From the IMG/VR virus record IMGVR_UViG_3300009430_000004, positions 1 through 64,000 of that record: a DNA stretch of 64,000 bases; one strand, 5' to 3'. A program made the translations under genes and the position numbers. A model generated the notes under the pieces. That model was given only the letters and a program-made list of their open reading frames with translations, was not told where the DNA came from and searched no databases. This document shows, piece by piece, positions 7,222 to 47,593 of this stretch (its first letter is position 1; the number at the start of each line of letters is the position of its first letter).

Positions 7222-7254
7222 AAATATATAGGAGGACATCCCTCCTATATATTT
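7222..7254 (-). terminator. Terminator after terminase
   Basis: AAATATATAGGAGG/CCTCCTATATATTT inverted repeat. Confidence 0.8.
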
Positions 7255-7255
7255 G

Positions 7256-9319
7256 TTAACTATTAAGTTCGTCGAATAAGCCCAGAGGCATGTCTCCTTC
7301 GCCTCCGAAATCATCATAGTCCTCTGCTACGTTGACACTATTTAACATCCTGTCAACATGTTGCATCTCTTTTCGTGCCCTTTGAATTTCTTCAACTAAC
7401 TTCTGATTATAATCATCCATTCCTTTAACACTAAAATCAGCAAAAGCTTGTTGAACGTCTTCAGGCATTTCTTGCATAGTCTCCTCATATGTGAGACCTC
7501 TGTTTCGTTTATCTTCATCAGGTATTTCTCCTCTTACAAATCCAAACCTGTGTAAGTTATTACCATGATAGAATACATAAAGAGCAATCAAATATGACAT
7601 AATACAGTCATCATGGAATCCTGCACCAGCTTCTATTCTACCCCTCTTAGTTCTTACAAGACTCATTAGGTCACTAATTACATTAGCACCGATAAATCTA
7701 TCTTTAAAGTCCTTAACATGGGCATCAAGTAACTGGAACATAACCTCTCTTGATTTACCTTGTGTATAAACACCATATAATTTTCTTCTTGCAGCTTGAA
7801 TCTTTAAGAATCCCTGAGCATCAAGTTTGTCATCAATATTAGCTCCAACAAAGTCTTTTGAGTTGTCGAAGTATAATTGACCATGTATATCTGTTTCTCT
7901 AAGTGCATCAAGTATTGATTCACCGTTGGCATTTCTTTCTATACAGAGTATACCTCTTGGGATATGTTTTCTAATAAGGATATATAAGAACTTAGTGAAT
8001 GTTGTCACACCAATGTATGGAGACTTAAACTCTGCAACTGTCTTGAGAGTGTATGGGTCTATTACAGTAACAGCGGAATTATCTTGACCATATCCATTAG
8101 AAACGTCGACACCTATAATATATACTCTATCTTTTCTAATTTGCTCATAAATATCAAGCTTAAATAGCTTGTTAATAAATAATTCTTCCTTAACCACACC
8201 CTTCAATTCCTCAATAGCAGCTAATTCTTCTGGTTCAAATGGAGACTCTGAAGAACCTCTCATTCTCTTTAAGAAGATTTCTCTTTGAATCTTAGCTGGG
8301 TTGTTAAGTACAGATTGACATGTCTTCTTGAACCATTCTTCATCTTTTCCTAATTGTTGATACTGATATTCGATATAGATAATACCATTACCAGAGTTAT
8401 TGGAGATATATTCATCTATATCGTTAACGTCCCAATCATAGAATTGCTCAGTCCATTTACATGTCTTTTCAATAATAAGTAATGCATCCTGACCTGGTTG
8501 TGTATCCAAGTCACCAGGTGTTGATGTGAATATACGGCAATAAGCCGCATTATTTCTCTTTGCATTTGAAGAAGCAGTATTATAAGCAGGACCTGCCGCT
8601 TCAACGATTGTCTTAATATGAGGTGTAAACTCAACCTCATCAAAGTATTGAATAGGTTGTGTACAACCTCTACCTATATTTTCAGCAGATTCAACTGAAC
8701 GTGCTGATGGTTTTGCAACTATTTTATTTCCATTGTTGGCATTGGTTAATGATTTAACATTATCAGCACCTTCAACTATCTTACCTTCATCTGTGATAGC
8801 AATCTTAAATTGTAGATATTTTGGTAATAAATCTCTTTGATCTTTTAATCTTGCTAAGTTATTATCAGCATCTTCCTGCTTCTTATTAATAAACATGAAC
8901 TCTGAGTTCGTTGTGCCAAATAAGAAAGTCCAGTCAAGTATTGCTAATGTTGATTGTGTTTTACCTATCTGTCGTGGTATAACCAAGTAGTGGTCTAAAC
9001 CATGCAAATAACACCATGTAGCAGCCAAATTGGCTCTATTAAGTTGGTAGGGGATACCCGTACCACCTTGCTCAGGTATTCTTGCTATTTCCCTCAAGAA
9101 ATACCATGGATTTATTATACACTCATTTATTATTCTCATTATCTGCTCTTCGGTTAAAAAAGGGGAGTATGGATCTACTCCCCTTAATCCCGTATCATAA
9201 AGCTTTAAAAAGAACATGTGGTCCTTAACCCCAAGAGTTTTTAAATCCTTGGCTGTTTGAAGGAAAGATATATTCTTGGTTTGAACGTCATAAATAAACT
9301 TCCTTGCCAAAGAAATCAC
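7256..9319 (-). CDS. terL: Terminase large subunit
   Basis: Walker A IPRQIGKT, Walker B YFDEVEF, RNase H-like nuclease IGVDVSNGYGQDNS and HDDCIMS. Confidence 0.92.
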   Translation of the reverse strand: MISLARKFIYDVQTKNISFLQTAKDLKTLGVKDHMFFLKLYDTGLRGVDPYSPFLTEEQIMRIINECIINPWYFLREIARIPEQGGTGIPYQLNRANLAATWCYLHGLDHYLVIPRQIGKTQSTLAILDWTFLFGTTNSEFMFINKKQEDADNNLARLKDQRDLLPKYLQFKIAITDEGKIVEGADNVKSLTNANNGNKIVAKPSARSVESAENIGRGCTQPIQYFDEVEFTPHIKTIVEAAGPAYNTASSNAKRNNAAYCRIFTSTPGDLDTQPGQDALLIIEKTCKWTEQFYDWDVNDIDEYISNNSGNGIIYIEYQYQQLGKDEEWFKKTCQSVLNNPAKIQREIFLKRMRGSSESPFEPEELAAIEELKGVVKEELFINKLFKLDIYEQIRKDRVYIIGVDVSNGYGQDNSAVTVIDPYTLKTVAEFKSPYIGVTTFTKFLYILIRKHIPRGILCIERNANGESILDALRETDIHGQLYFDNSKDFVGANIDDKLDAQGFLKIQAARRKLYGVYTQGKSREVMFQLLDAHVKDFKDRFIGANVISDLMSLVRTKRGRIEAGAGFHDDCIMSYLIALYVFYHGNNLHRFGFVRGEIPDEDKRNRGLTYEETMQEMPEDVQQAFADFSVKGMDDYNQKLVEEIQRARKEMQHVDRMLNSVNVAEDYDDFGGEGDMPLGLFDELNS

Positions 9320-9339
9320 CCCTTCAACGGTTAAATTAA

Positions 9340-10593
9340 TTAACCTTCATATCCCTTAGGATACTTTATAAATACACCATACTGTTTGTCTTTAATCTCA
9401 ATATTGAGAACTTGTTGTCTCAACTTCTCAAGTTGTGTCTTGAGAGATGTCAATGTCTGTTTTGACTGGGCAACCTTTTCAGTCTTACCCTTTTCAATAT
9501 ATTCAAGAGCTGCATTGACAAGGTCTAATTTGTCATATATAAGGTCTAGAACATATATCTTGTCATCATTGTTTTCAATCTTCTCAACTTGTATTGAAAG
9601 GAAATCTATATCACTTTGAGGAACCTTCTTCATTTTTCCGATATTATCGAAGATATCCAGAATAGATTCTCTCATCACGGTTTGACAGCCCGAAATTAGG
9701 TACTGTTCCGCAACAGCAATCTTGTAATTATCTTCCTCAGCCCCGAAGAAAGCATTCTTTATATCAGTGAATATACTCCTGACAAATATACTAGGGTTCT
9801 TTAGTATTTCAGTCTGTATAGACTGTCTTAACTTCTTCTTTCTGAACTCAAGTTCAGTTATATTGTCAATTGACCAATTTACGATAGACTTAATATCTCC
9901 ATCTATTTCATGGTCTGCTCTTTCAACAAGTCTATTTCCTTGGGATGATACTAACTTGGTAATAAAGTTGTTAAGCTCATCACCATATCCCATTTTAACA
10001 ACGAACTTGTCAGCAACCACTTCAGTATTTACACTATTGATGCGGTGGAAGTTTTTGCTGGTGCAAGCTTCAATTACTGCAATACCAAATAGCTTCCTTA
10101 TTTTATCATATCTAATAAGGTGCTTAACTGTAAAGTCAAGATTCATAATTTGGTATCTCATTACCTTATTAACCCTATGAGGGATACTATTTGAATGTAC
10201 CACATGTCCTATCTCATGTAATAGAACAGCAGTTATTTCTGATGGGTTAGCATTAAGACGATTATCGTATAATAGAAGTGAATCTATTTCTAAATGCCAC
10301 TCTGTATTCTTCTGCCAGATTTCTGACAGTGTTTCTGTATTTGATTTCTTATTAAGTATAGCCTCAACTATAGCATCTATTGTGCTCTTTTGAGGATAGA
10401 TATTCATTCCAAAGAATTGATTTGTGTCATTATTGATGATGGTGATGTTAAAATTAACATCAAACATCCTCTTCAAAACTCTCTGGATAGCAGCTATAGA
10501 ATTATGGACATCTTGCCCTGTTTTGATATTTCTAAAGCAACTTTCAATCAGTAATAAGTCTTGGGACTTTTTATTTAATTCCATCTTCTTCAC
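9340..10593 (-). CDS. HExxH zinc-metallopeptidase-like protein, probably virion-associated
   Basis: AVLLHEIGHVVH motif and downstream EVVADKF. Adjacent to the capsid gene; VMRE|S processing-like site. Confidence 0.6.
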   Translation of the reverse strand: MKKMELNKKSQDLLLIESCFRNIKTGQDVHNSIAAIQRVLKRMFDVNFNITIINNDTNQFFGMNIYPQKSTIDAIVEAILNKKSNTETLSEIWQKNTEWHLEIDSLLLYDNRLNANPSEITAVLLHEIGHVVHSNSIPHRVNKVMRYQIMNLDFTVKHLIRYDKIRKLFGIAVIEACTSKNFHRINSVNTEVVADKFVVKMGYGDELNNFITKLVSSQGNRLVERADHEIDGDIKSIVNWSIDNITELEFRKKKLRQSIQTEILKNPSIFVRSIFTDIKNAFFGAEEDNYKIAVAEQYLISGCQTVMRESILDIFDNIGKMKKVPQSDIDFLSIQVEKIENNDDKIYVLDLIYDKLDLVNAALEYIEKGKTEKVAQSKQTLTSLKTQLEKLRQQVLNIEIKDKQYGVFIKYPKGYEG

Positions 10594-10611
10594 CCTTTCT
10601 AAAAAAATAAT

Positions 10612-10648
10612 AAAACGACAACTCTCATTAAATAAGAGTTGTCGTTTT
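10612..10648 (-). terminator. Terminator after major capsid gene
   Basis: AAAACGACAACTCT/AGAGTTGTCGTTTT inverted repeat. Confidence 0.8.
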
Positions 10649-10684
10649 CATTTTTAATTTACACCTTGCCGCCTTAAGCAGCTA

Positions 10685-12391
10685 TTATACAGTTTTTCTT
10701 CCGAAGTCGTTGTTCGTTAATTTGAACTCGCCTTGTACTGGAAGAACTTCTGTAGTCAAGTATCTTGAAGTACCCATTACGTTTGGTGTTAATGGTGTGA
10801 ATGGGTTTCTGTAGATATTTTCAATGTTCAAGCTGTACTTGTAGTGCTTGAATGTTATTACTTCTTTGCTTAATGGGTAAGCGATAACTCTTATTCCTTT
10901 TTCCTTTGGAACCTTTAATGAGCTAACTACGTGAACACGGTTCTTGTTAGTTGTCATAACACCGAACCTGTAGTCAAGCTGGATTCCACCGATCTTAGTA
11001 TCTTCGTCAATTACCCACTTAACATCATCCTGAATGAGAGTAATGTTATTTGGATGACCATAAGCTACGAACATAATGTCTGTAGTCTTAAGCTTGGTCT
11101 TTAACTCATCAATCATTCTGTTGAGGTAGTATTTCATTTCCTGCATCCATTGTGAAGTTGTTACAAACACATTTGCAGGTGGTGTGCAGCTAAATTCGAA
11201 TGTTTCAACGAATCCATCGCTGTATCCGAATGGAAGGTCTTTCTTTCCTTTCCATTTTGTTAAGCTGTCATCAAGGAAGCTCATGATTGAGCTGTCTTCG
11301 AACTGAGTTAATACTGTACTCATGTCAGAAATAACTTCAGTTGTGATGTCCAGATCAAATAATGCCTTGTAGTCCTTAATCTTTTCGATAGTTAAACCAG
11401 TGTTGATTCTCTGACCATCAGGAATCTTCCACTCCTTAACTTCTCTTTCTCTATCAAGTTCTACTGTTTCCAAGTTATTTTCATTGGACAGATGTCCTCC
11501 GAATCTTACTTTCTTTATTTTTCCACCAGTTGAAGCAACTGATACTGATCCAGTGTAGAAGTCTACCTGTCCAGTGATTATGTCCTCAACCTTTGCAGCT
11601 TCTGCTCCTTCAGTCTTAATTCTGTATGTGAAGGAATTGTTAGCTCCCATATCAGGCTGGATGTTAAGACCATCAATAGTCTTTAATTCAACTCCGCCGC
11701 CTGCTTTTGGTACTTCGATTTGAACTGCTTCTACGCAGAAATCATATGCTAAGCTGTCTCTTGTTTCAAGAGATCCGCCTGAAAGCTGAAGTATTGTAAG
11801 GTCTTGTATTGGAAGAGCTGTGCCGTCTCCAGTTGGATACCAGGCATTGCTTACTACCTTACCTTTTGTTTTGTCAACTACTTTCTTGTAGTCGTCATTG
11901 TAGAATATTTCTGGAATGTAGTATTTAGTTCCAGTTTTATCCTTTAAGAATTTTCTTTCAAAAGCCATTTTAACGATTGGCTTAGTTGGAACCTCAGTCA
12001 TTACTATGTCCTTTGAATGGCACTCAAGATAATTCTTCTTGAGGATTGGCAGAGACACACCTACTATTGGTGCAAGCTGAGCTACAGAAGATTCTCTAAC
12101 GATTTCTGTGGAAGAGTTTTCAAAAAGCTGCTCTAATTTGCTCGGTATCATTGCATAGTATGGATCATCAAAACTTTCAGTGAGTACGTCGCCTATAAGC
12201 CTCTCTTTATAATCTTCCTTCAGAGCATCAACCTTCAGAATCTTAACTATATCATCTACAGCGTCAACGGAGTATGCTCCTCTGAATCCTTCTAGAAGGC
12301 TTTTAATACCATTCTTGAAGTCGACATTTTTGTCTGTAACGAAAGAACCAACAACTCTAGTAGGTTGCTGTTCATCTAAGTATTCATACAT
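10685..12391 (-). CDS. Major capsid protein
   Basis: 568 aa with highly expressed codon usage, its own late promoter and terminator, and neighbouring protease. Probable propeptide with VLTE|S and IVRE|S sites. Confidence 0.78.
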   Translation of the reverse strand: MYEYLDEQQPTRVVGSFVTDKNVDFKNGIKSLLEGFRGAYSVDAVDDIVKILKVDALKEDYKERLIGDVLTESFDDPYYAMIPSKLEQLFENSSTEIVRESSVAQLAPIVGVSLPILKKNYLECHSKDIVMTEVPTKPIVKMAFERKFLKDKTGTKYYIPEIFYNDDYKKVVDKTKGKVVSNAWYPTGDGTALPIQDLTILQLSGGSLETRDSLAYDFCVEAVQIEVPKAGGGVELKTIDGLNIQPDMGANNSFTYRIKTEGAEAAKVEDIITGQVDFYTGSVSVASTGGKIKKVRFGGHLSNENNLETVELDREREVKEWKIPDGQRINTGLTIEKIKDYKALFDLDITTEVISDMSTVLTQFEDSSIMSFLDDSLTKWKGKKDLPFGYSDGFVETFEFSCTPPANVFVTTSQWMQEMKYYLNRMIDELKTKLKTTDIMFVAYGHPNNITLIQDDVKWVIDEDTKIGGIQLDYRFGVMTTNKNRVHVVSSLKVPKEKGIRVIAYPLSKEVITFKHYKYSLNIENIYRNPFTPLTPNVMGTSRYLTTEVLPVQGEFKLTNNDFGRKTV

Positions 12392-26291: not shown

Positions 26292-26301
26292 TATATATTA
26301 T
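26292..26301 (+). promoter_or_regulatory. Early promoter (DNA polymerase operon)
   Basis: TATATATTAT. Confidence 0.7.
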
Positions 26302-26390
26302 CTTTATGTATAGGAGGTGAGATATAAATTTAGACCATATCGTAATATCGGGTTGTTAATCCGTTAAATATAATAAAGAGGTGGTATAAA

Positions 26391-34784: not shown

Positions 34785-36500
34785 ATGGGGAAAATGAGCA
34801 ATACAATATTTACACCAAATTATGACTGGAATGTCATTGACGAGAAAAACTTCAAGGATAGAGTACACATGGTATTCAATCAAGTTGCTGGAGCACTTGT
34901 CAATACATTAGGACCATATGGGTCAACTACAATCATTGAAAAATATGGTGAAATGCATATCACTAAAGACGGATGGCAAGTATTAAAGAAGATCCACTTT
35001 GGTGACCCTGTAAACAATAATATCATGCACTTGCTTATTAATATAAGTGCACAGGTAGTTCTTAGAGTTGGTGATGGAAGTACATCTTCCATTATAGCAG
35101 CTAATACTATTCTCAATCGTTTAGAGAATAATCCAACATTGAAGAAGATGAGACCTAAAGAATTCTTAAAGGTTTTATCTGCGGCTGTTGAATTGATATC
35201 ACAAAGAATTCTGGACTTCTCTTCTAAAATCAATAAGGAGAATGACCCAGATTTCAATGAAATATATAAGTTAGCTATGATTTCTACAAATGGTGATGAT
35301 GATGTTTCAAAAGTTATTCAAACCATTTACAGAGAAACAGTTAACCCAAGTATTGAATTTGTTCAATCAAAGACTAACAAGACCACATATGAAATCATAG
35401 AAGGCTATAAATTAGCTAATATGACTTACATTGATGGTATATTTGCTAATGGTGATGACGGTACTTGTTCTATTACAAAACCAATAATCATCATGTTTGA
35501 CCATAAGATTGACAAAGAAACACACTTTGATAAGATACTTACAAATGCTATACAAGTGGCTTTAGCCCAAGAAAGAAGAATAGTTATAGTCGCTCCAAAC
35601 TATGATAAGTATTTGCTTAACATGCTCGGTACTGCTATACCTATGGAATATAAAGCTAGAGGTACAAGCACTTCTGTGTATGCTAGAGTATCACTAATCA
35701 ACAATATGTCACATGAGTTATATAATGATTTCGCTACTATGACTGGCGGAATGATTATCAGAGAAACTCATATTGACCAGCTTGTAGATGGTACATTGAA
35801 AGTAGATGAATTCCTCGGTGAAGTTGACAACATCGTCATCGGAGATACATCAACTCTAATCAAAGGATTCTACAAGAGAAATGAGGACATGTACAATGTA
35901 TGTGTTAACGATGCTACAGCTAAGTACAAGAAAGTTGAAGCTACACATAGAGAGCTTGGAATAGTAAACTCTGAGTTATATGAGCTAAAACAAAGACTGG
36001 CTAAGCTTAGAGGTAAAATGGGAGTTATCTATGTAGGTGGAAACTCCTCACTTGAAAAAGTAAGTAACTATGACCTTGTAGAAGATGCTGTTAAAGCATG
36101 TGAATCAGCTTACAACTATGGGTACAATATAGGTGGTAACTTGATTCTTCCGATAGCTATAAGGCATATTAAAGAGAATACAGAAAATCTTTCAGACAAC
36201 ACAAAACTTATACTTGACTTATTAAATGATGCTTTCAGGGATGTATTTGTTAAGGTGCTTGGTAACAAGTTCACTGAGGAAAGAGATACAGGCTCTGATA
36301 AGTTATATGACATAGTAGATAAGTGTGTTGATTCTTGGAAGTGTTATGATTTAATCACTGATGAATACAGTGATAATGTAATTAATTCGTGCTTCACTGA
36401 TATTGAAATATTAAAGGCTGCAACATCAATAGTTTCACTGTTGATATCAAGTAACCAATATGTATCAATTATGGTGAGCAACTCTGAAGTACAACAATAA
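34785..36500 (+). CDS. Phage chaperonin (GroEL-like, AR9 gp228 type)
   Basis: TLGPYG, ITKDGW, VGDGSTSS, EDAVKA..A..YG..IGG motifs. No adjacent GroES gene. Likely start is ATG 34794. Confidence 0.9.
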   Translation: MGKMSNTIFTPNYDWNVIDEKNFKDRVHMVFNQVAGALVNTLGPYGSTTIIEKYGEMHITKDGWQVLKKIHFGDPVNNNIMHLLINISAQVVLRVGDGSTSSIIAANTILNRLENNPTLKKMRPKEFLKVLSAAVELISQRILDFSSKINKENDPDFNEIYKLAMISTNGDDDVSKVIQTIYRETVNPSIEFVQSKTNKTTYEIIEGYKLANMTYIDGIFANGDDGTCSITKPIIIMFDHKIDKETHFDKILTNAIQVALAQERRIVIVAPNYDKYLLNMLGTAIPMEYKARGTSTSVYARVSLINNMSHELYNDFATMTGGMIIRETHIDQLVDGTLKVDEFLGEVDNIVIGDTSTLIKGFYKRNEDMYNVCVNDATAKYKKVEATHRELGIVNSELYELKQRLAKLRGKMGVIYVGGNSSLEKVSNYDLVEDAVKACESAYNYGYNIGGNLILPIAIRHIKENTENLSDNTKLILDLLNDAFRDVFVKVLGNKFTEERDTGSDKLYDIVDKCVDSWKCYDLITDEYSDNVINSCFTDIEILKAATSIVSLLISSNQYVSIMVSNSEVQQ

Positions 36501-38991: not shown

Positions 38992-40020
38992 TTGGATAAA
39001 CGAGAGCTTAAGACTAAAATACGAACTGCACTACTAAGAGTGCAATCGGCTAGACAAACTTCAGGAGAACAAATTACATTGAGGTGTCCATTCTGTGGGG
39101 ATAGTATGAAGGATATAACTCATGCACACTTTAATGTGAAGATTAATTTATATGATGATGAACCTATAATATTCCACTGTTTTAGATGTGATATAGGGGG
39201 AATACTTACCCCATCACTACTAAGAACATTTAAGATTAGTGACCTACAAATGAATAGTGGGTTAATATCTTATAATAAAGAAACTATGGGTAAAGTAAAT
39301 AAGTCATTAGGAATTATCAATAATGACTTCAATTTTAGAGTACCTATGCCATCAGATTCTGAGAAAACCTATAAGAAGAAAGTTTACATTGAAAAAAGAA
39401 TGGGTAGACCATTTACGATAGAGGAATTAGTCGGTCATAAAGTTGTATTCAATCTTGGGGACTTTCTTAGAGAGAATGGGATAGATACTTTGACTGTAAA
39501 AAAGGAACAAGCAAAGCTTCTTCATGAAGATTATGTTGGGTTCCTAACGGCAAAGAATGAATTTATAAACTTCAGAGATATAACGGGGAATAATAAAAGA
39601 TACTACAAGTATAGTATCTTTAAGACTCTTGACAATACAAGAAAACAATATGTTATGCCTAATCAAATAGACCTGTTGTCTAATAATGAAATAGTTATAA
39701 ATATAGCTGAAGGTGTATTTGATATATTTGGTATATACTATCATCTTTTCGATCAAGAAAAGAAAAATATGATTTATACCGCAGTATGTGGTTCAGGTTA
39801 CATATCCGTATTGAAATACTTTATTCAAATGGGTGTAATCGGAAACGTAATAGTTAATATCTTCTCAGACTCAGATAGAACACCTAAGTTTTATAAAGAC
39901 CTTGAACTTGAAGACCAGATTAAGGATTGGGTAAAAACAATCAATCTGTTTTACAATGAAAAAGGTAAGGACTATGGTGTCACTAAGGATGAGATAAAGT
40001 TAATAAAGAAAAAATTATAA
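38992..40020 (+). CDS. DNA primase (DnaG-like)
   Basis: Zinc finger RCPFCGDS..H..FHCFRC and TOPRIM IAEGVFD..IFSDSD, KDYG. Confidence 0.8.
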   Translation: MDKRELKTKIRTALLRVQSARQTSGEQITLRCPFCGDSMKDITHAHFNVKINLYDDEPIIFHCFRCDIGGILTPSLLRTFKISDLQMNSGLISYNKETMGKVNKSLGIINNDFNFRVPMPSDSEKTYKKKVYIEKRMGRPFTIEELVGHKVVFNLGDFLRENGIDTLTVKKEQAKLLHEDYVGFLTAKNEFINFRDITGNNKRYYKYSIFKTLDNTRKQYVMPNQIDLLSNNEIVINIAEGVFDIFGIYYHLFDQEKKNMIYTAVCGSGYISVLKYFIQMGVIGNVIVNIFSDSDRTPKFYKDLELEDQIKDWVKTINLFYNEKGKDYGVTKDEIKLIKKKL

Positions 40021-40151
40021 CCGAAGGTAATAATCCTTCAGTTATAATTTTTTTTGGCGGGTAATTGTCATCTTCTCTAGGATAGGAAACAATGTTTTTG
40101 ACACAAAAAATACATTTATCTTTATAGGGTAACAAATTGTATTTGTATCTT
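40010..40151 (-). ncRNA. Candidate small RNA 2 (late promoter to terminator, about 140 nt)
   Basis: AACA TTTATT TA promoter at 40151-40162, terminator hairpin at 40011-40051, paralogous to sRNA 1. Confidence 0.45.
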
Positions 40152-40169
40152 AAATAAATGTTGAATTGA

Positions 40170-40262
40170 TAAAAAATTACAACTGAAGAATAACTTCAGT
40201 TGTAATCTTTCATTGTAATCAATACATTATATTATAGGAGATAAAATTTGTACTTTTATCTT
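40170..40262 (-). ncRNA. Candidate small RNA 1 (late promoter to terminator, about 90 nt)
   Basis: AACA TTAAAG TA promoter at 40262-40273, 5' hairpin AGAUAAAA/UUUUAUCU, and terminator at 40176-40206 followed by U6. Confidence 0.45.
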
Positions 40263-40345
40263 ACTTTAATGTTAGCAATAGAATATTATATTTTTCTTTT
40301 TTTAACAATTAATTAAAAATAAATAAAGATAGGTGGTGAACTTAA

Positions 40346-41536
40346 ATGGGATTTCTTGTAAACGAGAAGCAGTTTATTAATGATAATATATTCAAATACG
40401 AAGAGCGTATGAATTCCCAATATTCTCAGTTTCTGGATAAAGCACCAACATACGTATCATATTATCATATAAGTAATATTGAAAGTATAACGGACACTGG
40501 ATTGCTTAATGTGGAACAAATATTGGGTCCAAATTCCCCATTGAAGTATAAGCAGATAAATGACTTCCCTATATATGGTGTTGAACAAGTTCTTCTTGAC
40601 TTGAACGATGAGGAAGAAGGATTGAATACCAGTTTTGAAGGTGAGGCTATAATCCTGCCTAATACTGTCAAACCGTTACCGAACGATTTCTTCACAATAA
40701 GTTACATGGATAGCAACTATCTCTTTATGGTAACACAGATTAGTTATGATACCATCAAGAGTAATAACTATTATAAGATAAATTTTACAATTAAGTCCTT
40801 GGATGGTGATGGGGTAAGTAAGCTTGCATCACAGACTACTGAAAAGTTTACTTGCATTGTGGAGAATATAGGTACACAGGAGAAGTGTATCATAAGAAAT
40901 GATGACTTGAGCTTAATACTCAAGCTTAATACTATCTATAAGAATATAGTGAATAGATACAAAATGTTATTCTTCAATAAAAAATATAACAATTTTATAT
41001 TCGTTACTGAAGATATTAAAATTTATGACAAATATTTATCTCACTTCATGAATACTAACAAAATTCTGAATGAGAAATATGATTATGAAACAGTCTTCCT
41101 AACTAATGAAGACCCAACTAACACATTCCTATATGAGTATGAGACTTCATTGTTTAGGAACATAGAAACTCTGAATAAAAGCAAGCTAAAACATGTTGAT
41201 TATAGTCAAAGACTTATATCCAATCCTCAGTCTTGCTTTAGGTTCTATAGGGACAATGCAGTAAGGAGTGTGTCCTTTTTAAATGGAACAATACCGTATA
41301 TATCCCATGAATTAATTGATAGGATAAAATCGAAGGAGGTATTACAGACAGATGGTATAGTGAACAAAATCCTAATAGACTATTTCAATAAGTCAACGAC
41401 ATCTATTGCTAGTTTAGATCTCACAGCATTAGAGGACTACGACTACATTGATTATAGTTTCGAGAGCTTTGTTCTAATACCTGTAATTCTGTATATCCTG
41501 AGATATTATTACAGTATTTTCATGGCTATTAAATAA
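40346..41536 (+). CDS. Virion structural protein (neck/head-closure-like candidate)
   Basis: Late promoter at 40304-40315; beta-barrel-like N-terminal half (ILPNTVKPLPNDFF). Confidence 0.5.
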   Translation: MGFLVNEKQFINDNIFKYEERMNSQYSQFLDKAPTYVSYYHISNIESITDTGLLNVEQILGPNSPLKYKQINDFPIYGVEQVLLDLNDEEEGLNTSFEGEAIILPNTVKPLPNDFFTISYMDSNYLFMVTQISYDTIKSNNYYKINFTIKSLDGDGVSKLASQTTEKFTCIVENIGTQEKCIIRNDDLSLILKLNTIYKNIVNRYKMLFFNKKYNNFIFVTEDIKIYDKYLSHFMNTNKILNEKYDYETVFLTNEDPTNTFLYEYETSLFRNIETLNKSKLKHVDYSQRLISNPQSCFRFYRDNAVRSVSFLNGTIPYISHELIDRIKSKEVLQTDGIVNKILIDYFNKSTTSIASLDLTALEDYDYIDYSFESFVLIPVILYILRYYYSIFMAIK

Positions 41537-41588
41537 ATTTTTAAAAACAATAAAGTAAATAAAAATTGTTGAAAGGATGTGACCTTTT

Positions 41589-41849
41589 ATGCTTGAAGGG
41601 CTTAAGAAAGACATCGCAAGAGAAAAGAATAGCACATTTGTTTTTGAGGCTATGACTGAAAGTATGTCTGATGATGATATCAAAGATGCTTTTCTGGATG
41701 ATGAAGAGGTACTTGTATTGGGGGCTGAAAATGACCCTGAGATAGCCGAGTTGGCTGATGCTATTCCTGAATATGATGAAGATAATCAGGATATAGATGC
41801 TGAATTGGAGAATCTCCAAGAAAATTTCATTCCAGAATCAAAAATTTAA
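41589..41849 (+). CDS. Small acidic late protein
   Basis: Late promoter at 41546-41557, very D/E-rich, VFE|A and MTE|S sites. Confidence 0.55.
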   Translation: MLEGLKKDIAREKNSTFVFEAMTESMSDDDIKDAFLDDEEVLVLGAENDPEIAELADAIPEYDEDNQDIDAELENLQENFIPESKI

Positions 41850-41867
41850 GGAAGGGAGAATAAGAAC

Positions 41868-42311
41868 ATGAATGCTAAATTAATAAAGATCAAATCAAAT
41901 GGACCAATTTATGCTAAAGGAGGAGTTTACGGACCAATCGAAACTCCTTATGCTGAAGATTTAGGAACAGTCTTCAGAATGTTATCCGCTGGTGTTAAAA
42001 TTGTTGAAGTTTTAGAAGATGGAACTGAAGTGGTTCTTACAGTATCAAACTTCGATAAGAACAACGCACCTAAGAAAGAAGAGAAGGCTCAAGAGCCTGC
42101 AAAGGATCAAACACCTCCTCCTGCTAAACCACCTGCTCAGCAGCAACAGCAACAGCAGCAACAGGTTAAAAATCAGCAGGGGAATCAGAATAATCATGGA
42201 AATAACCACAATCAACAGCAGGGAAAAAATAAAGTTGAAACTACTACAAAAGTAGAAGTTCATACTGAAAAGACTGCTGCACCTGAAGTGGATTCAGTTG
42301 AAACAAAGTAA
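41868..42311 (+). CDS. Protein with small globular N-domain and polyQ/QN-rich tail
   Basis: AQQQQQQQQQVKNQQGNQNNHGNNHNQQQ encoded by mixed CAG/CAA codons. Confidence 0.65.
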   Translation: MNAKLIKIKSNGPIYAKGGVYGPIETPYAEDLGTVFRMLSAGVKIVEVLEDGTEVVLTVSNFDKNNAPKKEEKAQEPAKDQTPPPAKPPAQQQQQQQQQVKNQQGNQNNHGNNHNQQQGKNKVETTTKVEVHTEKTAAPEVDSVETK

Positions 42312-42324
42312 AAAAAAATAAGTT

Positions 42325-42359
42325 CAAGCCTCATAAGTGTTAATCACTTATGAGGCTTG
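42325..42359. terminator. Bidirectional terminator
   Basis: CAAGCCTCATAAGTG-ttaat-CACTTATGAGGCTTG. Confidence 0.9.
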
Positions 42360-43530
42360 TATTTATTTCATACAATAATCATTTGTGGAACTTCTATATA
42401 TTTAATCTACATGTTTTATTTTTTCCCACATTTTATTTATAGGCGTTCTAACAGTGTCGCCTTTATATTTTAGTTTCATAAATTCTCAAAAACCTTATTT
42501 CATCGTAATGATACTTTATTTTTTCTAATCCTTAGTTTAAATTCACATTTAATAGACATCTATATATAACTAATAGATACCTTCATCTAACTTAACTCAC
42601 TTTATAATCTTCAGTAAGTAATTATCTTTGCTCACTTCTGTGAATTAAACCTTCGTAATATTTATGTTTTTACCCATGTTTGTTTTTCACATTGTTTAAT
42701 ATAACAATAGTGCTCTGAAATAATAATTAATAATCTTTCTACAACGAAACTACGAATAATATAAAACAATTAATACTTAACTATTAACAGTTAAACCTTG
42801 TTTAGTAACAACTTTTTGGTGTTTAAAAATTATGTCAATGAACATACGAACGTACGGTATCTAAATAGATTTATTCGTTATCATTGTCATCATCCTCAAC
42901 TCCAATAGTGTCTCCGTCTAATATGATATCATCTCTATCGTCCATAATACTTACTACATACATTCACGTATATAGTAGTCTGCCGATCATAATAAACACT
43001 ATTCTTGTTTACGACTGATTTACATTGTAATAGGTTTAATTATAAACATTCCCACATGTTTTTAATAAAAACTTCTATCGAGGCTCTTGCCTTCTATATT
43101 TTGCGGTTGAGTATATCTCAACTATTTTTTACCCTTTTTTTCAACAAATTTGCGTTTTACGCCCCACGTGACTACGACGACCGCCACGCTTCCAGACACG
43201 ACGTGCAAATATAGAATAGTACATTGCAACATAGAACCTATAATCTACATTACGGAACATAGATTATATTGAACGACCGATTAATACTTCGTATAAACTT
43301 TATGTGGGTGGAAACTACAATATACTACAAGAATATACGTAGCCTACCCTCCTTTCTTTCTAAAATTTGTAGTATTTACCGCTAGTAATGAAAGAAAACA
43401 TATTCGTTTATACATCACCCCCTACACATTTTTTAAACTCCCACAGTCGGTCAAATCTGTGGAATCATGTACAAGGGGATCGCTCACCATCATAAAATGC
43501 CATAAAAATCACCCTCCCTTCAATATATTA

Positions 43531-43540
43531 GTAATATATA
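43531..43540 (-). promoter_or_regulatory. Early promoter TATATATTAC
   Basis: Contains the phiKZ early core TATATTAC, followed by the AAGGGAGGGTGA SD. Confidence 0.65.
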
Positions 43541-43715
43541 AATTAACTAACTACATTAAACAGGGTGGACGTTAACCAGGACATTCCATTTTTATCGCCT
43601 CCTTTGGCTCATTATTAATTGAGGTCGTATGTTCCAACTCCTCAACATTCCTTGATATACCCAATTGGGTTCCAACATCTCGCTCATTACAGTACCAATC
43701 AGGTATATCATAATA

Positions 43716-43725
43716 ATAATATATA
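43716..43725 (-). promoter_or_regulatory. Early promoter TATATATTAT
   Basis: Exact motif, followed by a 15-bp stem-loop. Confidence 0.65.
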
Positions 43726-43756
43726 ATTTAATGGTTTAAAAATACGGAAAAATAAA

Positions 43757-43791
43757 ATATGGTTATATGGAATCAATCCATATAACCATAT
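43757..43791 (-). terminator. Terminator after beta' N gene
   Basis: ATATGGTTATATGGA-atcaa-TCCATATAACCATAT. Confidence 0.88.
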
Positions 43792-43794
43792 CTT

Positions 43795-45381
43795 TTAACT
43801 TGCTTCAAACTTTGTTAGCATATATAAGGTATGAATACCCTCATTTGTTGTTTTTCTCATGTTTTGACCATATATATTAAGTATGTGAGATTTCGCTCTC
43901 ATTATCTTCTCAGCCTCTTGGTTTGCTTGTTGAGAGAATACTGATTTAACAGTAACTTGGTCACCATCATAGTCTCCACCCAATCCAGTTAGGTACAGGT
44001 TTGACATAGTTACAGTGTCAGCGAATGAAACTGATATTTGCTCTTTAGTTGCTTTCAAGTCTACCTTAGGGTAGTTCTTATAAACCCTTCCCCCTACATA
44101 CATTGGAACTGTATCATGTGTACTGAGTACAGTTATTTTGTTAGGGAATGTTCCGAAATAATCGAGCAGAGGATAACGTGTAACGTATACCATTTTATCA
44201 GATGTCACTTCTACTGCCGCCTGATATAATATATCACACCATGTTGCAGCTCTTTGAACTAATGGAGATTCCGTTTCAGGTGCTCCAGGTCTATATTCTT
44301 TACCAATAAAGCTTAGATTTATTTTACCCTCATATTCAGGATCTTCAACAGGAAGCTTGATTTTCTCAAATCTATCAGAATAACTGTAGATGAATCTATC
44401 AACTTGCTTCTTGATATAATCCTCATTAAAGTATAGTCCTGGGTCTTTAAGTTTAACGTACTTAATTTCCCCTTCTTTTGTTCTAATAGGGTATTTATTA
44501 CCCGTTTTTTCTAACTCACGCTGGAAAAATCTCTTAACCCATGAAATAATGAATGGGGTAAACAATGAGCAGCATTGAGCTAATGGAATTCCACAATGGT
44601 AGAAGTCAATATCCATTTCTTCAGGTCTATTAGATTTGAATACTGGTGCTGATATAACAGAACGAGCACCATAGTCAACAGATTTACCCAATAGGGATTT
44701 TCTTATAAGACCTTGTTTCTTTTCAATTTTACCTTTCAACTCATCATATATTTCCACTAATGTCTCTTGGATTTTTGCTCTTGTTGTATTAAGAACGAAA
44801 TCAAAGTTGTTATCGTTCCTTAGAATCGAAGCTAATCTTATCAACTTCGAGTATTTATCATTTATAACATGGTGAGATAATATTCCTTTAGATGCGTTTT
44901 GTAAATTAACGTCTCTATAGAATGCAGGTATTACAATCCATTGTTGACAAAAGATTGTATCCTTATCAAATGCGTCGAGAACGTCTATTCTTTCACTACG
45001 AATCATACTGTTATTCCTCATAAAATTTAGCTTATCCCAATTCTTATATAGGAATTCAAGACCAGTATCACCGTTTTCTTCATCTTCGATTAATTGTCCC
45101 TCTTTGTTAATTACAAATTTTTTCGAGCCATACACTATACTTTCAAAATTACGATTCATTCTCTTTAAAAGCTTGTATACAAATGGTGTTATAAAATGAC
45201 CGTTTAAGCCCATATAAGCGTATGTTTCTCGTCTCTCGTTTACAGACACTCCAAAGATATCCGTTGATAAAAGACCATTAGAGGTAGGAATGTTACCCTT
45301 CTCGAAAATTATTGACTCAGTAACTTCCTTAAGCTTATTTTCCTCTATAAACTTTTTAACAGGAATTAAATCTATCTTCAT
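43795..45381 (-). CDS. Multisubunit RNA polymerase beta' N-terminal half (catalytic), probably virion RNAP
   Basis: GLLSTDIFG, GLIRKSLLGKSVDYGARSVI, VTRYP, and catalytic GGDYDGD. Last gene of a late baseplate operon. Confidence 0.9.
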   Translation of the reverse strand: MKIDLIPVKKFIEENKLKEVTESIIFEKGNIPTSNGLLSTDIFGVSVNERRETYAYMGLNGHFITPFVYKLLKRMNRNFESIVYGSKKFVINKEGQLIEDEENGDTGLEFLYKNWDKLNFMRNNSMIRSERIDVLDAFDKDTIFCQQWIVIPAFYRDVNLQNASKGILSHHVINDKYSKLIRLASILRNDNNFDFVLNTTRAKIQETLVEIYDELKGKIEKKQGLIRKSLLGKSVDYGARSVISAPVFKSNRPEEMDIDFYHCGIPLAQCCSLFTPFIISWVKRFFQRELEKTGNKYPIRTKEGEIKYVKLKDPGLYFNEDYIKKQVDRFIYSYSDRFEKIKLPVEDPEYEGKINLSFIGKEYRPGAPETESPLVQRAATWCDILYQAAVEVTSDKMVYVTRYPLLDYFGTFPNKITVLSTHDTVPMYVGGRVYKNYPKVDLKATKEQISVSFADTVTMSNLYLTGLGGDYDGDQVTVKSVFSQQANQEAEKIMRAKSHILNIYGQNMRKTTNEGIHTLYMLTKFEAS

Positions 45382-45778
45382 AAATGTCCTCCTCTCTACA
45401 GATTTTTTTATTCTCTATAGAGATGTTCAGTTTATTGCTTTCCTTTTCAATTTTGACAGAAAAGTATTTGGAATAGTAGACACTATTTTTATTTTTTGTA
45501 TATTTATCCATAACCTTTCTAAAACTGTCTCTATCCTTATTGTCATCAAATTTTATTATGACAATTAACTGCTTTGTATTCTCAGTGCATTCAATTTTCT
45601 GCACGTCGCCCAAGCATATATCTTCAATAATCAAATAGAAATATTTAAATTTTTCATAATGTAAATTCAGTATATCCTCAAATAAATCACAATCAGCTAA
45701 CTCATTTTCGGTTAGCTGATTGAAAACTGAAATCATATCATTCAACCTCAAAACCCCCTTTTCTACATTTTTTAGCAA
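45356..45778 (-). CDS. Hypothetical protein
   Basis: Operonic; probable start is ATG 45736. Confidence 0.5.
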   Translation of the reverse strand: MLKNVEKGVLRLNDMISVFNQLTENELADCDLFEDILNLHYEKFKYFYLIIEDICLGDVQKIECTENTKQLIVIIKFDDNKDRDSFRKVMDKYTKNKNSVYYSKYFSVKIEKESNKLNISIENKKICREEDIYEDRFNSC

Positions 45779-45794
45779 CAGGATTGGGGTTCCA

Positions 45795-45989
45795 CTACTT
45801 CTTTAAAATCGAGTGTCTAGCTTGATCTCGCTTATGCTTATCAGCTTCTAGCTTCCTTTCCCGTTCTAGCTCTTCTCTCTCTTTATTGAGCCTCTCGACT
45901 CTTGCATCCCTCAATAAGAGGGCTTCCTTATAGCTGAGATTGTGTTTTAGCTCATCTAAAGGAATCTGCCCCTTAAAGAGTTCTAGCAT
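45795..45989 (-). CDS. Small ORF, likely the -1 frameshift extension of the upstream chaperone (T4 gp51 C-terminal-like)
   Basis: No good RBS. Its frame is open upstream to the T6 run at about 46053-46058. Confidence 0.45.
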   Translation of the reverse strand: MLELFKGQIPLDELKHNLSYKEALLLRDARVERLNKEREELERERKLEADKHKRDQARHSILKK

Positions 45990-46015
45990 CTCATCATAGA
46001 ACGAGTATAGCTGTT

Positions 46016-47593
46016 TTACTCGATTGTTGTAGTCATCGCCTGTTGATACTTGTAAAAAAGTATGGATTCGATATCCATAGGTAATGAAACCGTATGTTTT
46101 TTACAGTGTGGGCAAGTTACATTCATAAGACCGAACTCAAAGCTCAGGTCATTTAATAATAAGTCACCCTGTTTAGTAATTACAAGAATATCTGTGTCCT
46201 TTAATGTGTAGATAACCTTAGCAATATCAAGTGCATCGGAAATTTCTACATAAGTTCCTGGTTCATCTGGATCTGGTACATAAATCGTCTTAACAACGGA
46301 TGAAAGTACAGATGCCTGATTATATTTAGGGTCTTTATTTTCAGAAAGACCTTTAATTGATCTGTATATAAAGTCATATGCTGATTGCACATAGCATTCC
46401 GCTAAGTAGCCACTCATTGGAAGTTTAACAGTCTTAACGACATTTACAGCAGAATTTGAGTGTTTCTGTTTTGCTAAATCGTCTGAATGAGAAGCATCAA
46501 TTATTGACACAATCAGATCCTGAAGCTTTTCAGACATCTTTTCAGCTCTGATAAGTGATTTTACTGTATATTCATGGTCGAACTGTTTCTTACAGTCCTT
46601 GTTTTCACACTTTAATGGAATCTTGTCAACATCAGGATATGTTGCACAAAGAATACCATATATGAATACATTATAGTCGACAGCAGCAGTATGTTGAAGG
46701 AAAGTATTGAAATCCATTGTTCCTATACTTGTTGTATCAACCTTGCTGTGTACAAGTGACCATTTAGTTTCTGTATCAAGTAATACATTCTGAGTATCTG
46801 TCATCAATCCCATTAACTCATATGTTGAGCAGCCTCTCATGATAGCTGTGTATCCTGAAGCAGGAAGCACTATAGGAGTTGTATGAATTGATGGCTGTCT
46901 CTTAAGAATCTTATCAAGACTACCCTTCTTAGCTTTCTTTGTCTTGAAAGTTTTAACTTCTATAGTTTCAACTTCTTCGAGTTTTATTTTCTTTACTCTC
47001 TCAAGTTTTTCTCTCTCTTCATCTGTGAAGTTGATGATAGTACCCATTCCTGTTTTGTCGATGATAACTACTGCTTCATCGTACTTCTTTTGGAATTCTT
47101 CTGGGTCATCTCCTTCTTCATCTTCTTCGTCTTCATCTGAATTATTTTGTTGCTGTGCCTTCTTTTCTTCAGCAACTTCCTTAGCTTTTTCTATTTCCTT
47201 ATCCATTTCATTTAGATAAGCATCCACTCCACTTAAAGCATCAGGTGTTAGACCGACAGTTGCCTTTGGAGCTTGTTGTGGTGCAGGGATATCATTCTTG
47301 TTTATTACTACCCCTGGTCCCTCATAGTCCGCTGCACTAGACGCAATATTATTACCATCATTAGGTAAAACTGGTCCTGTTACAGTAGTATCATTTTGAT
47401 GTTGGGTATTAGCATCAGCCGCTGTTACAGCAGCATCACTGTTGCCAGTTATATTAGCTTTTTCCCACCAATTTCCTCCAACAGTTGGAGTTGTCTCTTC
47501 ATCTGATTGATTGTTTGAATTTTGTCCAGTGAGCTCTTTAGCTCCAGCTTGTAAATCTTTCAAGCTCATGTTTTCGTCTCTGTTGATTTCCAT
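46016..47593 (-). CDS. Baseplate-hub/tail assembly chaperone (T4 gp26/gp51-like) with disordered N-terminus
   Basis: C-terminal CENKDC and CPHC motifs; about 150-aa low-complexity N-terminus; follows a gp25-like gene. Confidence 0.5.
   Translation of the reverse strand: MEINRDENMSLKDLQAGAKELTGQNSNNQSDEETTPTVGGNWWEKANITGNSDAAVTAADANTQHQNDTTVTGPVLPNDGNNIASSAADYEGPGVVINKNDIPAPQQAPKATVGLTPDALSGVDAYLNEMDKEIEKAKEVAEEKKAQQQNNSDEDEEDEEGDDPEEFQKKYDEAVVIIDKTGMGTIINFTDEEREKLERVKKIKLEEVETIEVKTFKTKKAKKGSLDKILKRQPSIHTTPIVLPASGYTAIMRGCSTYELMGLMTDTQNVLLDTETKWSLVHSKVDTTSIGTMDFNTFLQHTAAVDYNVFIYGILCATYPDVDKIPLKCENKDCKKQFDHEYTVKSLIRAEKMSEKLQDLIVSIIDASHSDDLAKQKHSNSAVNVVKTVKLPMSGYLAECYVQSAYDFIYRSIKGLSENKDPKYNQASVLSSVVKTIYVPDPDEPGTYVEISDALDIAKVIYTLKDTDILVITKQGDLLLNDLSFEFGLMNVTCPHCKKHTVSLPMDIESILFYKYQQAMTTTIE

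Follow-up and report, generated by a model that had tools for sequence, protein, structure and literature searches.

In the 64,000-nucleotide stretch of DNA analysed here (positions 1 to 64,000 of the IMG/VR virus record IMGVR_UViG_3300009430_000004; hereafter the window), the minus strand carries a cluster of five strong Shine-Dalgarno (SD) sequences that drive only mini open reading frames (ORFs) or none, next to the gene for the N-terminal part of the beta' subunit of a virion RNA polymerase (RNAP). The cluster is real and far from chance, and SD sequences of the same kind recur in the same slot of related phages. Judged from these sequences, the conserved feature is extended, ORF-less complementarity to the 3' tail of 16S rRNA together with an adjacent stem-loop. 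We tentatively suggest that such sites would dock 30S ribosomal subunits in the service of an early transcript that encodes a conserved acidic micro-ORF.

A preliminary description of the window, made from its letters, had placed five SD sequences with their mini-ORFs here, and all of these elements were confirmed on the minus strand (Table 1). The stop codon of MCRG* overlaps the next ATG (UGAUG), and the spacing of SD4 is unusable because the ATG of its ORF overlaps the SD itself. We scored SD strength on both strands as hybridisation to a Firmicutes-type 16S tail (GAUCACCUCCUUUCU), which is assumed. On this scale 24 sites in the window reach -14 kcal/mol or lower; 18 precede ORFs of at least 58 aa and six are ORF-less (orphan), and four of these six fall within 43358-43605 (-14.3, -15.8, -16.7 and -16.8 kcal/mol). 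The orphan SDs of the cluster equal or exceed most real ribosome-binding sites (RBSs) in strength, and their predicted accessibility (0.20-0.42) lies inside the range of real RBSs (0.12-0.65). By a cruder motif count the region has six SD-like sites per 300 nt, a value equalled but not exceeded elsewhere in the window.

The cluster lies within a 1,483-nt gap (42312-43794), bordered by the beta' gene and a late gene of convergent orientation. No other long stretch of the window is free of ORFs; the remaining apparent gaps contain small genes. A periodic Markov score trained on the window's genes revealed no coding signal in 43340-43600, and weak signal at two places in the gap, the micro-ORF at about 42871-42963 and a 39-codon ORF (43592-43711) without an SD, whose start precedes the predicted transcription start.

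The early promoters of phage AR9, which its virion RNAP uses, have been mapped experimentally to AAATATATATTAT-(6N)-G (PMC5312081). Promoter P1, upstream of the cluster, conforms to this consensus and shares its 13-mer, letter for letter, with the mapped AR9 g001 promoter; the motif TATATATTAT, which corresponds to the AR9 early promoter, recurs upstream of many real genes of the window. The "early RNA" of the preliminary description thus gains support from a promoter match, with transcription itself predicted. In contrast, a second promoter-like motif departs from the consensus at the invariant last T and at +1, and is doubtful because a C replaces the T common to all 41 mapped AR9 early promoters and its +1 is A. 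The stem-loop at the 5' end of the predicted P1 RNA (-19.5 kcal/mol) is the strongest among the window's early-promoter transcripts. No intrinsic terminator was predicted on the minus strand between 43750 and 42360, and none before the micro-ORF in the window or in relatives L005, L018 and L020; TATGTAG, a candidate promoter before the micro-ORF, is too common a motif to judge. Given the promoter match and the lack of a predicted terminator before 42359, the SD cluster would most simply be the leader of an early transcript running over the micro-ORF.

The same slot in related phages

Relatives were collected from viral contigs (two scans) and metagenome contigs (one scan); loci are designated L005 and so on, the window's own contig being L004. 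They share the gene order, with beta' identities of 60-75%; the metagenome scan added no closer relative. Their intergenic DNA could not be aligned with the window by blastn or nhmmer, and a MAFFT alignment was not meaningful. Even so, L005, L014, L018, L025 and L020 each carry two or three orphan SDs on the same strand (-13.1 to -21 kcal/mol). Counting orphan SDs of -13.5 kcal/mol or lower in six loci (L004, L005, L014, L018, L020 and L025), we found 14 in 6.2 kb of slot versus six in 153 kb elsewhere; in the slot all lie on the beta'-sense strand and none on the opposite strand. Within the L014 clade (L014, L018 and L025), about 110 nt around an orphan SD are 100% identical, versus 81-84% in the flanks. 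The preliminary description had asked whether SDs of this kind start normal-length ORFs in relatives; those counted precede none in any related lineage. It had also asked what is conserved across phages: the ORF-less 16S complementarity recurs, which on the sequences compared upholds its ribosome (30S) theme, whereas neither GGA nor the mini-ORF peptides are conserved.

The only similarity across lineages that blastn and nhmmer detected between the gap and the relatives' loci is the acidic micro-ORF, which also has a positive coding score. Orthologs are present in L005, L020, the L014 clade, L055, L057 and L063 (Table 1), encoding a micro-protein whose length is 14-24 aa and whose core reads (D/E)G(D/E)T(I/V)G, always as the last gene before the convergent late gene. 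Codon differences in the core are mostly synonymous third-position changes (GGA/GGC/GGG, GAC/GAT, ATT/ATC), indicating that the micro-ORF is a real micro-gene; automatic gene callers would probably miss it. At the same position two more distant relatives (L007, about 8150-8290; L012, about 9010-9160) have a 40-47-aa ORF (…GHYEAY..EFICSGDT.NEC…) that may be a longer homolog.

The micro-ORF and the orphan SDs are distributed in a complementary manner. Where the micro-ORF lacks an SD, orphan SDs lie upstream on the same strand (five of five lineages); where it has its own SD, in L057 and L055, no orphan SD is present (zero of two), and in L057 it stands behind an early promoter and a 37-nt leader. 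This pattern fits a role serving the micro-ORF transcript.

All RNA structures described here are thermodynamic predictions. In five independent lineages a hairpin of about 9-14 bp is predicted 1-2 nt past the SD nearest the micro-ORF. Its energy over 45 nt (-8.2 to -13.8 kcal/mol) is reached by three of 57 genuine RBSs and by 4.7% of random windows, and its sequences are unrelated between lineages. In four of the five lineages the hairpin is immediately followed by a C-rich anti-SD, with which the SD core is predicted to pair once flanking sequence is folded as well (window, CCACCC; L005, ACCU...UCAC; L020 and the L014 clade, UAACCUCUA); L063 has no such partner. The window's instance of this module type is SD5, which has no start codon and folds better in the sense (-15.9 kcal/mol) than in the antisense direction (-11.9 kcal/mol). 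The same preference for the sense strand holds in five of six loci. Across the cluster the predicted fold has four SD:anti-SD stem-loops, and the density of anti-SD-like sites on the minus strand (43625, 43568, 43479 and 43311) is reached by 1.3% of 300-nt windows.

The slot between the beta' gene and the micro-ORF is an insertion hot spot. L055 has four extra same-strand genes there (8851-10916), and a gene of 107-110 aa is found in L018, L025 and L032, one of 76 aa in L007. L014 has lost the body of the 107-110-aa gene to replacement, and its promoter, SD and ATG remain with an 8-codon ORF. Three of the L055 slot genes (159, 207 and 171 aa) are paralogs with about 30% identity.

Genomic setting and rejected identities

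The window belongs to a viral contig of 218 kb found in a groundwater metagenome. A copy with 99.9% identity occurs in a second sample; its gap sequence differs twice and its SD cluster is unchanged. A second DNA run yielded only identical fragments at low coverage, and a search for RNA runs with this sequence found none. Megablast and blastn against 50,697 phage records found no nucleotide homology of the region. At the protein level (tblastn), the window's beta' N-terminal subunit shares 38-41% identity with its counterparts in the Bacillus phages BpSp, Goe21 and AR9/PBS1 and in jumbo phages of Staphylococcus and Listeria; the annotation of the AR9 ortholog, g145, reads virion RNAP beta' N-terminus, with three exons. 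The window's gene is intron-free. The beta' genes of L006, L007, L012, L014, L018, L020 and L025 contain group I introns (Rfam RF00028), inserted after residue 242 and after about residues 470-474, the latter site being the catalytic DYDGD motif, and one L020 intron encodes a GIY-YIG homing endonuclease.

Several identities for the cluster were considered and rejected. A pseudogene is contradicted by the negative Markov score and by the lack of similarity to the relatives' slot proteins (tblastx, tblastn). Stop-codon recoding is unlikely because six-frame translation shows mixed stops. An intron or a known non-coding RNA (ncRNA) was ruled out, as Rfam gave no match at gathering score in the whole window and none at E <= 0.5 in 40000-47000, and ARAGORN found nothing in the window. 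Fold z-scores were unremarkable for a large structured RNA. Three short repeats hinted at an internal duplication of about 630 nt, but its alignment score did not rise above shuffles (z about 2.4). Repeat finders detected no iterons or tandem repeats pointing to an origin.

Elsewhere in the window, an ORF-less SD (TAGGAGGTGA, -16.1 kcal/mol) stands at 26310 on the plus strand (region 26294-26390), about 4 nt past the predicted +1 of an early promoter and in the 80-nt leader of a 645-aa gene that has its own RBS; it was dropped as a candidate conserved stabilizer, not being conserved in relatives. A bidirectional terminator at 7225-7256 (TATATAGGAGG(G/A)...CCTCCTATATA) is itself an SD:anti-SD hairpin and resembles the conserved element of the L014 clade. 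Within the gap, a terminator-like hairpin with a T run lies on the plus strand at 43105-43123, where no plus-strand promoter motif was seen, and adjoins a GC-rich patch (43150-43250, about 60% GC versus 30-35% for the genome). The convergent, late structural side of the gap includes a Cpn60/TCP-1-type chaperonin (34785-36500, plus strand) and a head-tail joining protein (40346-41536, plus strand).

Table 1. Features of the gap and of the corresponding slot in related phages (positions in the window unless a relative is named; RNA structures, promoters and transcript ends are predictions)
Feature	Position	Strand	Description
Virion RNAP beta' N-terminal subunit	43795-45381	minus	528 aa, DYDGDQ motif; upstream neighbour of the SD cluster
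Bidirectional intrinsic terminator	43754-43794	both	18-bp stem and T run on each strand; ends the beta' gene; upstream slot border
Early promoter P1	43731-43709	minus	AAATTATATATTAT-tattat-G; AR9 early consensus match; predicted +1 = G43709
5'-terminal stem-loop of predicted P1 RNA	43709-43654	minus	15-bp stem from nt 1
Hairpin	43648-43620	minus	SD-like GAGGAG pairs with ACCUC; in two folds; anti-SD-like site 43625
SD1	43605-43595	minus	AAAGGAGGCGA; -14.3 kcal/mol; 8-nt spacer, ATG 43589, 5-codon MECPG*; unit 43572-43605
Stem-loop	43571-43465	minus	anti-SD CCACCCU (43570-43564) pairs with SD2
Second promoter-like motif	43546-43524	minus	AATTTATATATTAC-taatat-A; C replaces T; +1 = A
SD2	43521-43510	minus	AAGGGAGGGTGA; -15.8 kcal/mol; ATG 43503, 12-codon MAFYDGERSPCT* (43503-43465)
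Nested stem-loop	43480-43413	minus	anti-SD AUCCCCU (43480-43474) pairs with SD4; inner hairpin CCACAG/CUGUGG carries SD3
SD3	43445-43438	minus	TGTGGGAG; ATG 43429, 4-codon MCRG* (43429-43415)
SD4	43423-43413	minus	AGGGGGTGATG (GGGGGUGAUG in the nested stem-loop); -16.7 kcal/mol; 23-codon ORF 43415-43344
SD5	43358-43347	minus	AAGAAAGGAGGG; -16.8 kcal/mol; no start codon
SD5 module	43358-43306	minus	SD5, 1 nt, 14-bp hairpin (43345-43312, four G-U pairs), anti-SD CCACCC (43311-43306)
Acidic micro-ORF	42963-42871	minus	in-frame upstream ATG 42963; no SD of its own; conserved part 42945-42871, peptide MDDRDDIILDGDTIGVEDDDNDNE
Bidirectional terminator	42325-42359	both	shared with the convergent 147-aa gene; downstream slot border
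Orphan SDs, L005	7801, 7869		AGAAAGGAGGTGATC; both -21 kcal/mol; 16S-tail complementarity up to 15 nt
Orphan SDs, L014	8590, 8710
Orphan SDs, L018	9250, 9369
Orphan SDs, L025	8933, 9049
Orphan SDs, L020	9347, 9458, 9526
Orphan SD, L063	8713
Micro-ORF peptide, L020	9838-9894		MDEGEDIILEGDTIGGFE
Micro-ORF peptide, L005	8097-8147		MGEDIIIFEGDTIATIE
Micro-ORF peptide, L014/L018/L025	L014 8856-8900		MMDGDTIGLEYDEE
Micro-ORF peptide, L057	~8725-8799		...YEGETVGRPA
Micro-ORF peptide, L063	~8797-8868		...LDGETVGVWR
Micro-ORF peptide, L055	~10978-11052		...WEGETIGIEV

Possible roles of the cluster

We propose that the variable slot between the beta' gene and the convergent late gene holds an early transcription unit, transcribed from P1, with the cluster as its 5' part and the 14-24-codon acidic micro-ORF as its sole conserved coding element. 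Its long leader would present four to five very strong SDs that start nothing useful, most of them closed by C-rich anti-SDs on the same strand. These SDs would act as non-initiating docking sites that pair with the 16S 3' tail of the 30S subunit, and a docked ribosome could form a roadblock to 5'-to-3' decay and thereby stabilise the transcript; alternatively it could stand by for the SD-less micro-ORF. We tentatively prefer this family of ribosome-docking mechanisms, in which the micro-ORF transcript is served by stabilisation or, less well supported, by ribosome delivery, and we hold it to be plausible but somewhat short of probable. Across the variants of this proposal, 30S binding would stay the common denominator.

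Several points weigh against the docking proposal. The promoter, its +1 and the extent of the transcript are predictions, and a Firmicutes-type 16S tail and RNase J are assumptions whose sole support is the extended GGTGAT consensus of the phage's RBSs. The distances of SD1-SD5 from the predicted +1 (105-360 nt) and from the micro-ORF (395-640 nt) exceed those in classical stabilizers, and most of these SDs are predicted to pair with anti-SDs, which could block 30S binding instead of allowing it. Regional fold z-scores (-2.15, -1.19 and -0.82) are unremarkable, and covariation is not measurable because the relatives are either too similar (the L014 clade) or unalignable. Stabilisation would also leave five copies here versus one to three in relatives unexplained, and the similar orphan SD at 26310 is not kept in relatives.

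A serious alternative, although in our judgement an unlikely one, is that the orphan SDs are neutral relics without function, either the 5' ends of deleted accessory early genes or the RBS of the micro-ORF displaced by insertions. The insertions listed above mark the slot as a place where genes come and go, and L014 shows the process directly. SD1-SD3 have the exact architecture of real early gene starts (SD, 8 nt, ATG, with stop/start overlaps), and the orphan SD at 26310 is specific to its lineage. On the other hand, 43340-43600 retains no residual coding signal and no similarity to the relatives' slot proteins, so that any decay would be old, yet the SDs are still among the strongest of the window. 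Neutral decay also sits poorly with the presence of orphan SDs wherever the micro-ORF lacks an SD (one in L063 and two or three in each of four other lineages), invariably on a single strand, and with the perfect conservation of the SD block in the L014 clade; nor does it predict an SD-adjacent hairpin that recurs in five lineages with different sequences.

An improbable reading is that an abundant early RNA acts as a decoy, occupying the anti-SDs of host 30S subunits or cycling ribosomes on 4-5-codon ORFs, and so dampens or re-programmes early translation. One predicted early transcript would carry four to five sites of -14 to -17 kcal/mol, with complementarity that reaches the GGUGAUC part of the 16S tail; three of the mini-ORFs are ideally spaced, and the strong 5' hairpin suggests a long-lived RNA. 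However, the phage's genes use equally strong SDs, so a decoy would harm the phage too, relatives have only one to three sites, and most sites are predicted to be masked by same-strand anti-SDs. We found no precedent in the literature.

We rate as similarly improbable a form of translational control in cis, in which the SD:anti-SD stem-loops would be a switch or standby platform for the SD-less, structurally occluded start of the micro-ORF. Standby sites and the split RBS of T4 gene 38 would be analogies for such control. That orphan SDs occur where the micro-ORF has no SD of its own, and not where it has one, speaks for such a switch; so do the start codons of the L014-clade micro-ORFs, predicted inside a CCCCAU/AUGGGG stem, and the L063 SD, which is only about 90 nt from the micro-ORF. 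Elsewhere the distances (395-640 nt in the window, 140-380 nt in the others) are long for standby or shunting, and no conserved long-range pairing could be shown.

Quite improbable, too, is a ribosome-directed regulator in the full sense, in which the early RNA would be an anti-SD-gated array of 16S-tail-binding sites on which 30S subunits are parked or sequestered as infection begins, to re-programme translation. If true, such a "ribosome sponge" would be a class not described for phages, and would do more than stabilise its own transcript.

The mini-ORFs themselves have little standing as the active element. It is very unlikely that the 4-12-codon ORFs work as minigenes, sequestering tRNA through peptidyl-tRNA drop-off as in lambda bar, or encode tiny effectors. 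MECPG* and MCRG* are SD-driven, have 5 and 4 codons and ideal spacing, L063 has MYEP*, and minigene toxicity is established (PMC2490762). But the peptides are not conserved, and most orphan SDs of relatives, like SD4 and SD5 of the window, have no start codon at a usable distance, while the AUG in L063 is buried in a predicted 10-bp stem. The micro-effectors of the preliminary description find no backing here.

Its other proposal, a sponge whose GGA motifs titrate host CsrA (RsmA) and de-repress flagellin, is extremely unlikely. There are nine GGAs in 380 nt, a count that 5% of windows reach, and known CsrA targets have CsrA sites that overlap SDs. Predicted hairpin loops hold only two of the nine GGAs, however, and most are in stems. 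The GCC-AAAGGA-GGC hairpin (43608-43597) that had been put forward appears in one minimum-free-energy fold, with the GGA of SD1 in its hexaloop, and is absent from another; its stem has only 3 bp, and that GGA has an unpaired probability of about 0.5. The homologous motifs in L020 (AAGGTGGTGA, found twice; GGTGGTGA) and in the L014 clade (GGGGGTGAT, (A)TGGGG(G)TGAT) contain no GGA yet keep their 16S complementarity. In Firmicutes the known CsrA antagonist is a protein, FliW, not an RNA. Because neither peptides nor GGAs are conserved, and GGAs are not clearly enriched and few lie in predicted loops, the CsrA-sponge and micro-effector readings lose, and a CsrA or motility story is unnecessary to explain the pattern.

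Comparison with known systems

CsrB, RsmY and RsmZ resemble the cluster in being non-coding RNAs with repeated GGA-containing purine motifs. The GGAs of those sponges are multiple, exposed in loops and conserved in homologs; here they are neither predominantly in loops nor conserved, and it is the 16S-tail complementarity that is conserved instead. The lambda bar minigenes are similar in that an SD and an AUG are followed by a few codons and a stop within a non-coding region of a phage. That format (SD, start, at most about six codons, stop) is found in two ORFs of the window and one of L063 and is absent from the other lineages; unlike a shared minigene, it is thus not conserved across related phages.

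Closer to the docking proposal are leaders that bind ribosomes without translation. The aprE, ermC and gsiB leaders of Bacillus subtilis combine a 5' stem-loop and/or ribosome binding without translation, much as the predicted P1 RNA begins with a 15-bp stem followed by SDs, but they precede normal genes and have one RBS each. In leaders of the aprE type, a strong SD confers stability whether or not a start codon is present (PMC7509114), and transcripts without a start codon are stabilised by strong SDs (PMC7509114, PMC11805744). An RBS-like polypurine element at the 5' end of an early RNA of the Bacillus phage SP82 (Hue et al. 1995, cited in the same two sources) stabilises the RNA downstream, and mutation of the RBS shortens the half-life of the mRNA. 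SP82 matches the present case as a phage early RNA with a stabilising RBS-like purine tract in a low-GC Gram-positive host; it differs as a single element of an unrelated phage. The SP82 stabilizer reportedly also adjoins a stem-loop cleaved by RNase III, an arrangement that would be similar to the coupling of SDs with stem-loops seen here.

The nearest match is STAB-SD of cry3A from Bacillus thuringiensis (Agaisse & Lereclus 1996, reviewed in PMC4113751), which binds the 30S subunit without initiating translation, blocks RNase J1 and stands about 125 nt upstream of its ORF (PMC4113751). Like the orphan SDs, it is an SD-like sequence (GAAAGGAGG) in a 5' untranslated region that pairs with the 16S 3' end at a distance of more than 100 nt before the ORF; the orphan SD of the L014 clade precedes the micro-ORF by 141-147 nt, against a position of about -125 in cry3A. 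Two properties of STAB-SD are found in the phages as well: complementarity to the 16S 3' end (-14.3 to -16.8 kcal/mol against the assumed GAUCACCUCCUUUCU, and to -21 in L005), and no translated gene, since SD4 and SD5 have no usable start and the ORFs of SD1-SD3 have 5, 12 and 4 codons. In contrast to cry3A, the phages have two to five tandem copies, each with a hairpin and a same-strand anti-SD, the transcript would be a phage early RNA with an ORF of only 14-24 codons, and stabilisation is predicted by analogy.

ORF-less SDs have been described singly, as 5' stabilizers of Bacillus mRNAs and of one Bacillus phage. Here a clade of AR9-like jumbo phages keeps ORF-less SDs at one locus, each coupled to a hairpin and in most lineages to an anti-SD, and present where the micro-ORF of a newly recognised, conserved acidic micro-protein has no SD of its own. 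If these SDs dock ribosomes, they would make a small natural element with which to stabilise RNA or park ribosomes in low-GC hosts, and would open a way to study how jumbo phages handle their early transcripts.

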